Assembly: GCA_025201805.1 (NCBI GenBank)
Contig: MU619331.1
Location: 1-64,000, forward strand
Reading direction: 5' to 3'
Length of the DNA: 64,000 bases
Origin: Parasitella parasitica NRRL 2501
Lineage: Eukaryota > Fungi > Mucoromycota
Below are positions 28,682-30,187 of this stretch, piece after piece. The translations under genes were made by a program, and so were the position numbers. How positions within the stretch are numbered: the first letter of the stretch is position 1; each line of letters starts with the position of its first letter. The notes beneath the pieces were generated by a model. That model was given only the letters and a program-made list of their open reading frames with translations. It searched no databases and was not told the origin of the DNA.

Positions 28682-29045
28682 GGTCAAATGAAAAAGAGAG
28701 AGAGAAAAAAAGGTAAGCTGTAAAAATGTAAAGGTGTAAAAAAAAAAATAAGAGAAATGGAAGAGAAGAGAAACAGTTCTAAAACTAGTTGTTTGTTTAC
28801 ATTTATATTCTCTCAAAGATACAAAGATCCTCACATTGCTGTAATCTGATCACAGGTGACAAAATCACTTCCAGGCACATGTCCAAATATGGAGCAACCG
28901 AACACCCTTATAAACGTTCGGTCCGGATCTATTTGAAGCCATAGTTTCAAGGTTATTCTCACTCAGCGAGAACGTACAAGCAATTGAGCGTATTGAAAAC
29001 CATAGTACCTCCTCTTTCAGCTCCCATAAGCACCCATTTTGAACA

Positions 29046-29840
29046 ATGAAGTAATGTATCACTCTCTATCGAAAATGAGAGACATCCATGATATCGACAT
29101 TAGATTATGCTGCATGATTGAATTGTGGATGGATGAAATATAAAATTTTACTAGATGGATTCTAACATGGATTCATATCCAATTTTTTTGTGTTGTTTAA
29201 AGGCTTGAGATTTGCTCCTTCTCTGGTCACAAGATTTATCCTGCCAAGGGTAAGACCTACGTCCGCATCGACTCTAGGTAATTTACGAGATCAAACAGTT
29301 GTAGCCACTGCATAACTAACATTTTATCTATAGAGTAAGAAATCAACATACTCAAGTTTGAGTACAATTCTAATTTTTTTTTTTTTAATGCTGTACAGAT
29401 TTTCCGTTTCATCAACGGTAAGGCCGCCTCTTATTCCCTTCAACGCTTGAACCCTCGCAAGATCAGATGGACCGTCATCTACCGTCGTTTGAACAAGAAG
29501 GGTATGGCTGAGGAAATCCAAAAGAAGCGTGCTCGTCGTACCGTCAAGCACGAACGTGCTGTTGTTGGTGCCTCTTGGGATGCCATCCGTGCCAAGCGCA
29601 ACCAAAAGCCTGATGCTCGTGCTGCTGCTCGTCAAGCCGCTATTTCCAAGTCCAAGGATGCCAAGAAGGCTGCTGCTGCTGCCAAGAAGGCTGCTAACCC
29701 TGCCGTAAGTTGATTGATTTTTTGTGGGAAATAGGCCAATCTCTCATATTTTTCTATTTGTGTATTAGGGCTCTCAAGCCAAGGTTAGCAAGCAACAAGC
29801 CAAGGGCTTCGCCCCTAAGGCCGCTGCCACCTCTCGCTAA
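29046..29840 (+). CDS. RPL24: 60S ribosomal protein L24 (eL24); 5 exons including a 1-nt exon at 29334
   Basis: [35 protein letters not shown]...NPRKIRWTVIYRRLNKKG. Exons 29046-29050, 29203-29277, 29334, 29399-29704, 29769-29840. Confidence 0.95.
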
Positions 29841-30187
29841 ATTGCTTACATCCGACAATTTTAAAATTATGAATAAAAAATGTAATGCATTGTTTATTTA
29901 AGCCAACTTTTTGACAGTTTGCCACTATGCATTATGGAGAAATGGTGGTTTTTGATGAGAAATCATACAGGTTCGTTACTCATATCGTGGCGGTATGCTT
30001 AATCACATTTAAAATGTGCTGCCATGCAACAGATAGTTTGTTTTACATGCAGAAATACAAGGACATTGTACACTTATAGCGTCTCACGGCTACGGCTAGG
30101 CAGATATTGAGGATGGCTTTTATTTTGTGAACAAAACAGTGCAGTAACCCAACCGCCACTGTCCAGGCGATATTCTTCAGAGACAAT

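Follow-up and report, generated by a model that had tools for sequence, protein, structure and literature searches.

We are highly confident that the gene for ribosomal protein eL24 (RPL24) in Parasitella parasitica carries an internal exon of just one nucleotide, an A at position 29334, located between two short U2-type GT-AG introns. All coordinates refer to the window, i.e. the whole analysed stretch of 64,000 nucleotides from strain NRRL 2501 (contig MU619331.1, positions 1 to 64,000), in which the gene occupies positions 29046-29840 of the + strand. Its parts, and the evidence from which each was defined, are as follows:

29046-29050, + strand: coding part of exon 1, ATGAA, i.e. the start codon and two letters of codon 2 (sequence)
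29051-29202, + strand: intron 1, 152 nt, GTAATG..AAAG (joint of 29050 to 29203 with GT..AG ends in cDNA contigs of runs X3 and X5)
29203-29277, + strand: exon 2, 75 nt, (K), 24 residues and AG, the first two letters of codon 27 (translation)
29278-29333, + strand: intron A, 56 nt, GTAATT..CTATAG, phase 2 (sequence; same position in 10 Mucoromycotina loci)
29334-29334, + strand: one-nucleotide exon, A, third letter of codon 27 (AGA, Arg) (X1 joint and sole AG-N-GT site)
29335-29398, + strand: intron B, 64 nt, GTAAGA..TACAG, phase 0 (sequence)
29399-29704, + strand: exon 4 (the large exon), 306 nt, 102 codons, IFRFINGK...AANPA (translation, Pfam, PDB chains, cDNA contigs)
29705-29768, + strand: last intron, 64 nt, GT..AG (joint of 29704 to 29769 in a 1300-nt X1 contig)
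29769-29840, + strand: last exon, coding part, GSQAKVSKQQAKGFAPKAAATSR and the stop codon TAA (29838-29840) (translation)

Judging by the family profile and by similarity to solved chains, the gene product is ribosomal protein eL24. Exon 2 matches positions 4-26 of the Pfam family PF01246 (Ribosomal_L24e) with 37.1 bits and the large exon matches positions 28-66 with 47.4 bits, both above the curated cut-off of 27 bits. Solved eL24 chains from the PDB align to the large exon from residue 28 (9axt_Bi, E=1.8e-30), and the best protein database matches are Mucoraceae eL24 sequences with 95-97% identity.

The requirement for an additional letter follows from the reading frame. Exon 2 ends with GAC TCT AG at 29277, in phase 2, and is followed by GTAATT, while the large exon starts with ATT TTC CGT at 29399, in phase 0, which makes an in-frame direct joining across the 121 nt between them (29278-29398) impossible. 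Since the profile matches stop at position 26 and resume at position 28, and exon 2 ends with AG, exactly one letter of codon 27 is missing relative to the homologs. The sequence-only reading of this DNA had claimed that a single 121-nt intron would shift the frame of the gene, and that skipping of the A would yield an out-of-frame product. Computation agrees on both points: direct joining of exon 2 to the large exon leads to a stop after 16 codons, at 29448-29450, and to a product of 43 residues, and the profile positions 26 and 28 flank the gap. With the A included, codon 27 reads AGA (Arg27), within the conserved motif DSR-IFRF.

Neither exon end is adjoined by an A in the genome. The 121 nt contain a single AG-N-GT site, CTATAG/A/GTAAGA (29332-29336, N being the A at 29334; slashes mark exon borders), which separates two ordinary GT-AG introns, 56 nt and 64 nt long, and the one extra nucleotide of the transcripts is the genomic base between this AG and this GT. 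Among 20,000 dinucleotide-preserving shuffles of the stretch, a YAG-N-GTAHG site leaving two introns of at least 45 nt appeared in 0.2%. Both flanking introns possess their own complete set of canonical signals (GT, branch site, YAG). In intron A, the branch site is ACTAAC (29315-29320), whose branch A at 29319 lies 15 nt from the 3' splice site; in intron B, the candidate branch site CTAAT (29370-29374, within TTCTAAT at 29368-29374) is followed by a T run and then by TACAG ending at 29398. The initial description of these elements (the exon ends, ACTAAC, the A at 29334, TTCTAAT, and TACAG) was correct in every detail checked.

Transcripts were analysed in run X1, a public run with 35% of the gene's sampled words (about the share expected from the exons alone), and in three runs with lower shares, all compared with positions 28900-30000 as assembled contigs, which drop rare variants. 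The type of X1 is recorded as “RNA? (a guess)”, and its cDNA status was taken from the contigs themselves. They are mostly 99+% alike to the window, with zero depth over every intron and with adapter tails; being intron-free and adapter-tailed, they represent cDNA. In the X1 joint of 29277 to 29399, 121 nt are skipped with GT..AG ends, and exactly one letter, an A, stands between the two sides, which gives the mRNA junction GAC TCT AGA ATT TTC CGT. The contigs read ..CTCTAG-A-ATTTTCC.., just as had been predicted, and the skipped form, in which exon 2 is joined directly to the large exon, is absent from the contigs of the four runs, in which rare forms are dropped. Every transcript form seen among these assembled contigs includes the A at 29334. 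Intron A has zero contig depth in all four runs (bins 29307-29380), exon 2 is covered by cDNA contigs, and those over the large exon do not differ from the genome. The other two introns of the gene are likewise confirmed by cDNA joints with GT..AG ends, and the 1300-nt X1 contig extends to 30000, covering the 3' UTR of the eL24 gene. The A in the cDNA and the sole AG-N-GT site thus bear out the one-nucleotide exon between introns of 56 and 64 nt that had been proposed from the letters alone.

A second X1 contig reads GA+TAGCAGA+ATT and differs from the window at 20 positions between 29399 and 29583. These are exactly the 20 differences between the window copy of the gene (L001) and its paralog L002, so this second paralog also has transcript proof of the single A. 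Contigs of relatives (X2, X3, and X5; 88-99% likeness) read AGA ACT TTC or AGA ACC TTC at the junction. The same letters bear on the sole single-intron solution, one 120-nt intron with GT..CA or TA..AG ends that keeps the G at 29278 or 29398. Such an intron would restore the frame and still encode Arg, as AGG, but the cDNA letter is A, not G, in both transcribed paralogs and in the relatives' contigs, and neither set of ends is canonical, while the stretch offers two complete canonical introns. Since the cDNA reads AGA, we regard the AGG-type intron as excluded and give it practically no weight.

The genome assembly (32.8 Mb, 450 contigs) contains three eL24 copies on three contigs: C95 (the window), C101:6991-7293, and C18:284752-285051. 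Over the large exon, these paralogs share 93-97% protein identity, and all three have the order exon 2 ..AG, GT..YAG, A, GTA(A/T)G..YAG, A(T/C)T TTC CGT, while their intron sequences cannot otherwise be aligned. The layout AG/GT..YAG/N/GTAHG..YAG/ was found in 10 loci from eight species of Mucorales and Umbelopsidales, with otherwise different intron sequences, so that it is conserved in orthologs and paralogs despite intron divergence. The three paralogs are joined here by seven loci of other Mucoromycotina genomes, including the independent assemblies of Mucor circinelloides, Rhizopus delemar, Lichtheimia ramosa, and Umbelopsis sp., as well as those of Cunninghamella echinulata, Absidia repens, and Syncephalastrum racemosum; a comparison of AG-N-GT across Mucorales had been suggested as a check, and its outcome is in favour of the exon. 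Mucoromycotina were sampled as Mucorales and Umbelopsidales, Endogonales being absent among the protein matches. Across the loci, lengths of 56 to 102 nt were recorded for intron A and of 52 to 399 nt for intron B. Several candidate branch sites are weak in the relatives, and in intron B of Lichtheimia no branch site matching YTNAY was found.

The exon letter itself is variable. In Syncephalastrum racemosum (L011, about 1208-1275), exon 2 ends with AA and the single letter is G (AATAG/G/GTAAAG), which gives AAG (Lys), in agreement with the Lys of the public protein model P0076. The micro-exon has therefore survived a change of its own letter, and Syncephalastrum provides a natural variant of it.

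This conservation also bears on the possibility of an assembly error, i.e. a single 121-nt intron with a base missing from the assembly beside an exon end. The A of the cDNA could in principle stem from an unassembled A adjoining 29277 or 29399. However, the same phase mismatch and the internal YAG/N/GTA occur in the two further eL24 contigs of this genome and at seven loci of other species, the exon ends lie outside homopolymers, and public gene models fail at the same junction in many assemblies. Ten loci with the same layout exclude an assembly indel, which is indirect support for the assembly, and we consider the chance of such an error to be negligible. The one-letter exon is real.

A reasonable scheme for the splicing of this region can be suggested. 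In fungi with short introns (~60 nt), intron definition is the usual mode, and introns A and B would each be recognised independently in this way, since each has its own 5' splice site, branch site, and pyrimidine-rich 3' splice site. Their removal would be sequential, one after the other: a single base separates the 3' splice site of intron A from the 5' splice site of intron B, and the bound factors would overlap, which makes simultaneous handling impossible. Once either intron is out, the A would stand at the edge of a normal-sized exon, and removal of the other would be an ordinary splice. The three exon letters before the donor of intron B are AGA both before and after the removal of intron A, so the sequence gives no order of splicing.

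Such a process would resemble recursive splicing, except that one letter is kept. Zero-nucleotide recursive splicing at ratchet points (AG/GTAAGT) is known in Drosophila and vertebrates, where introns are removed stepwise (also cited in PMC4674806). As at these points, in eL24 a 5' splice site comes immediately after a 3' splice site, and removal would have to proceed in steps; but at ratchet points the mRNA retains nothing and the introns are very long, whereas in eL24 one letter is kept and the introns belong to the shortest class. A zero-nucleotide recursive site was accordingly rejected for the window, as AG and GT are separated by one base, which the cDNA retains. A stwintron was rejected as well, since donor, branch site, and acceptor of both introns are already intact before splicing. 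We suggest that the eL24 exon is a good natural substrate for dissecting how two adjacent introns are removed in order. It is also easy to study, because the gene is essential and abundantly expressed and the included transcripts are found in public runs.

A real one-letter exon may in addition act as a control point, with an excess of eL24 causing the A to be skipped and the frameshifted mRNA, encoding 43 residues, to be directed to NMD; we hold this to be improbable. With its early stop (29448-29450) falling far upstream of the final exon junction, the skipped form is a plausible NMD target, and splicing-based autoregulation is known for several ribosomal protein genes of yeast, worms, and people. 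Moreover, the first 13 nt of intron B (GTAAGAAATCAAC, 29335-29347) are identical to those of Mucor circinelloides (L014:1321-1333), while the rest of both introns has diverged. On the other hand, the contigs of the four runs, which drop rare forms, contain no skipped form, no conserved structure or Rfam family was found, and the intron sequences differ freely among the paralogs. The literature searched contains no published evidence for eL24 regulating its own mRNA. The conserved GTAAGAAATCAAC may represent an element extending beyond the 5' splice site or may just reflect the shared ancestry of two or three close species. In its full form, this proposal would make inclusion of the A a sensed and regulated step, with excess eL24 or slowed splicing favouring direct joining and with GTAAGAAATCAAC being a part of the control element, which we likewise regard as rather doubtful. 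If true, regulated inclusion would explain why all copies descended from the ancestor that Mucorales and Umbelopsidales share have retained such a fragile arrangement.

The origin of the two introns can be traced by comparison with outgroups. Benniella (Mortierellomycotina) and Glomus cerebriforme (Glomeromycotina), as placed by taxonomy look-up, as well as Basidiobolus meristosporus and Calcarisporiella thermophila, possess a single phase-0 intron that directly follows codon 27, which is complete in them (AGG in Benniella and Glomus, AAA in Basidiobolus, AAG in Calcarisporiella), and the one-letter exon is absent from all four. Since intron B occupies the exact position of the outgroup intron, a position common to these early-diverging fungi, it represents the old intron, and intron A is a novelty of Mucoromycotina. 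As judged from the compared sequences, intron A, located one base upstream and in phase 2, arose before the split of Mucorales and Umbelopsidales and was kept in all later copies.

Two origins of this arrangement are possible. Intron A could have been inserted at a CAG/A site, and this site fits the protosplice consensus MAG/R. Alternatively, the old intron could have been split after the loss of one base at the exon end. The present data cannot tell these origins apart; we lean towards insertion because it does not involve a frameshifted intermediate in an essential gene. The exon has a readable origin, with an extra intron placed one base upstream of an older phase-0 intron.

One-letter exons are the smallest that the spliceosome can keep, and only a handful of them is documented. 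The literature searched contains no paper on a one-letter exon in eL24 or in Mucorales. The class itself is rare but already known, and eL24 is an unusually old and well-expressed case of it. A single-nucleotide exon was published for APC11 of Arabidopsis by Guo and Liu (2015, PMC4674806). Like the eL24 exon, it consists of one A, is internal and constitutive, lies between two canonical GT-AG introns, is essential for the frame, and was missed by annotation. For APC11, Guo and Liu proposed intron definition with one intron removed after the other, and they cite a mini-exon of potato for which the downstream intron is removed first (PMC4674806). Unlike eL24, APC11 is a plant gene encoding a low-abundance protein, and its rice counterpart has no intron at this place, i.e. 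the conservation is shallow (PMC4674806), whereas eL24 is an essential and highly expressed ribosomal protein, with the exon kept across two fungal orders and in all paralogs. The evidence also differs, the APC11 exon being backed by a mutational test and the eL24 exon by sequence and cDNA contigs.

Another example is represented by the CYP621A P450 genes of Fusarium, for which Nelson and Syed (2026, PMC12940212) described a one-nucleotide exon, presented by them as the second case overall and the first fungal one. It resembles the eL24 exon in being fungal, in having an AG-N-GT core (AGGGT in CYP621A), in being located inside an over-long “intron” of about twice the median length, and in the failure of most gene models at the site; in both cases, the support comes from reads of public runs and from conservation in orthologs. 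The CYP621A exon supplies the middle letter of a Gly codon and belongs to a gene that is seldom expressed, in a single genus; that of eL24, found across Mucoromycotina, supplies the third letter of a codon for Arg or Lys in a housekeeping gene. In addition, a long-read annotation of Coprinopsis cinerea lists 13 1-nt exons in the passages considered here (PMC12230235), and this list predates the first-fungal claim of the CYP621A paper (PMC12940212). As far as these passages go, the Coprinopsis entries are similar to eL24 in showing that one-letter exons recur in fungi with short introns; they give genome-wide counts, and within them a gene-by-gene description, conservation, and origin are absent (PMC12230235).

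The prediction that gene predictors would miss such exons is borne out by public annotations. Dozens of public eL24 models of Mucorales and Umbelopsis (among P0002-P0075) are wrong at this junction, including some from agents of mucormycosis. The errors are of three kinds: six residues are dropped in P0006, P0018, P0027, P0034, P0035, and others; the intron is read through in P0002, P0004, P0015, P0025, P0065, and P0069; and exon 2 is in a wrong frame in P0009, P0011, P0013, P0014, and P0062. Models from Mortierellomycotina and Glomeromycotina, which have the single intron, are mostly clean at the junction. The one-letter exon is already implicit in some public annotations: the NCBI protein P0001 of Parasitella parasitica has the correct DSRIFRF and is 100% identical to paralog L002 over 100 residues. 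For the window copy, no correct model turned up in the protein search. The upstream donor used in many public models (..GKTY/TFRF, with VRIDSR dropped) was rejected as a candidate, no such joint being present in any run. The read-through protein models of Mucor (..DSRVRNQ..) imply the same letters as GTAAGAAATCAAC.

Some additional features of the eL24 introns may be mentioned. At 152 nt, intron 1, which interrupts codon 2, far exceeds the gene's other introns in length. Scanned against Rfam for snoRNAs and regulatory RNAs, the segment 28500-30500 gave a single match at chance level (E=0.99) and no family in intron 1. In paralog L002 (minus strand), intron B has a length of 126 nt and contains a (GAGAGAAA)n microsatellite at about 1840-1890 in locus coordinates. 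In Absidia (L013), intron B reaches 243 nt, and the 399-nt intron B of Cunninghamella (L012) is very AT-rich.
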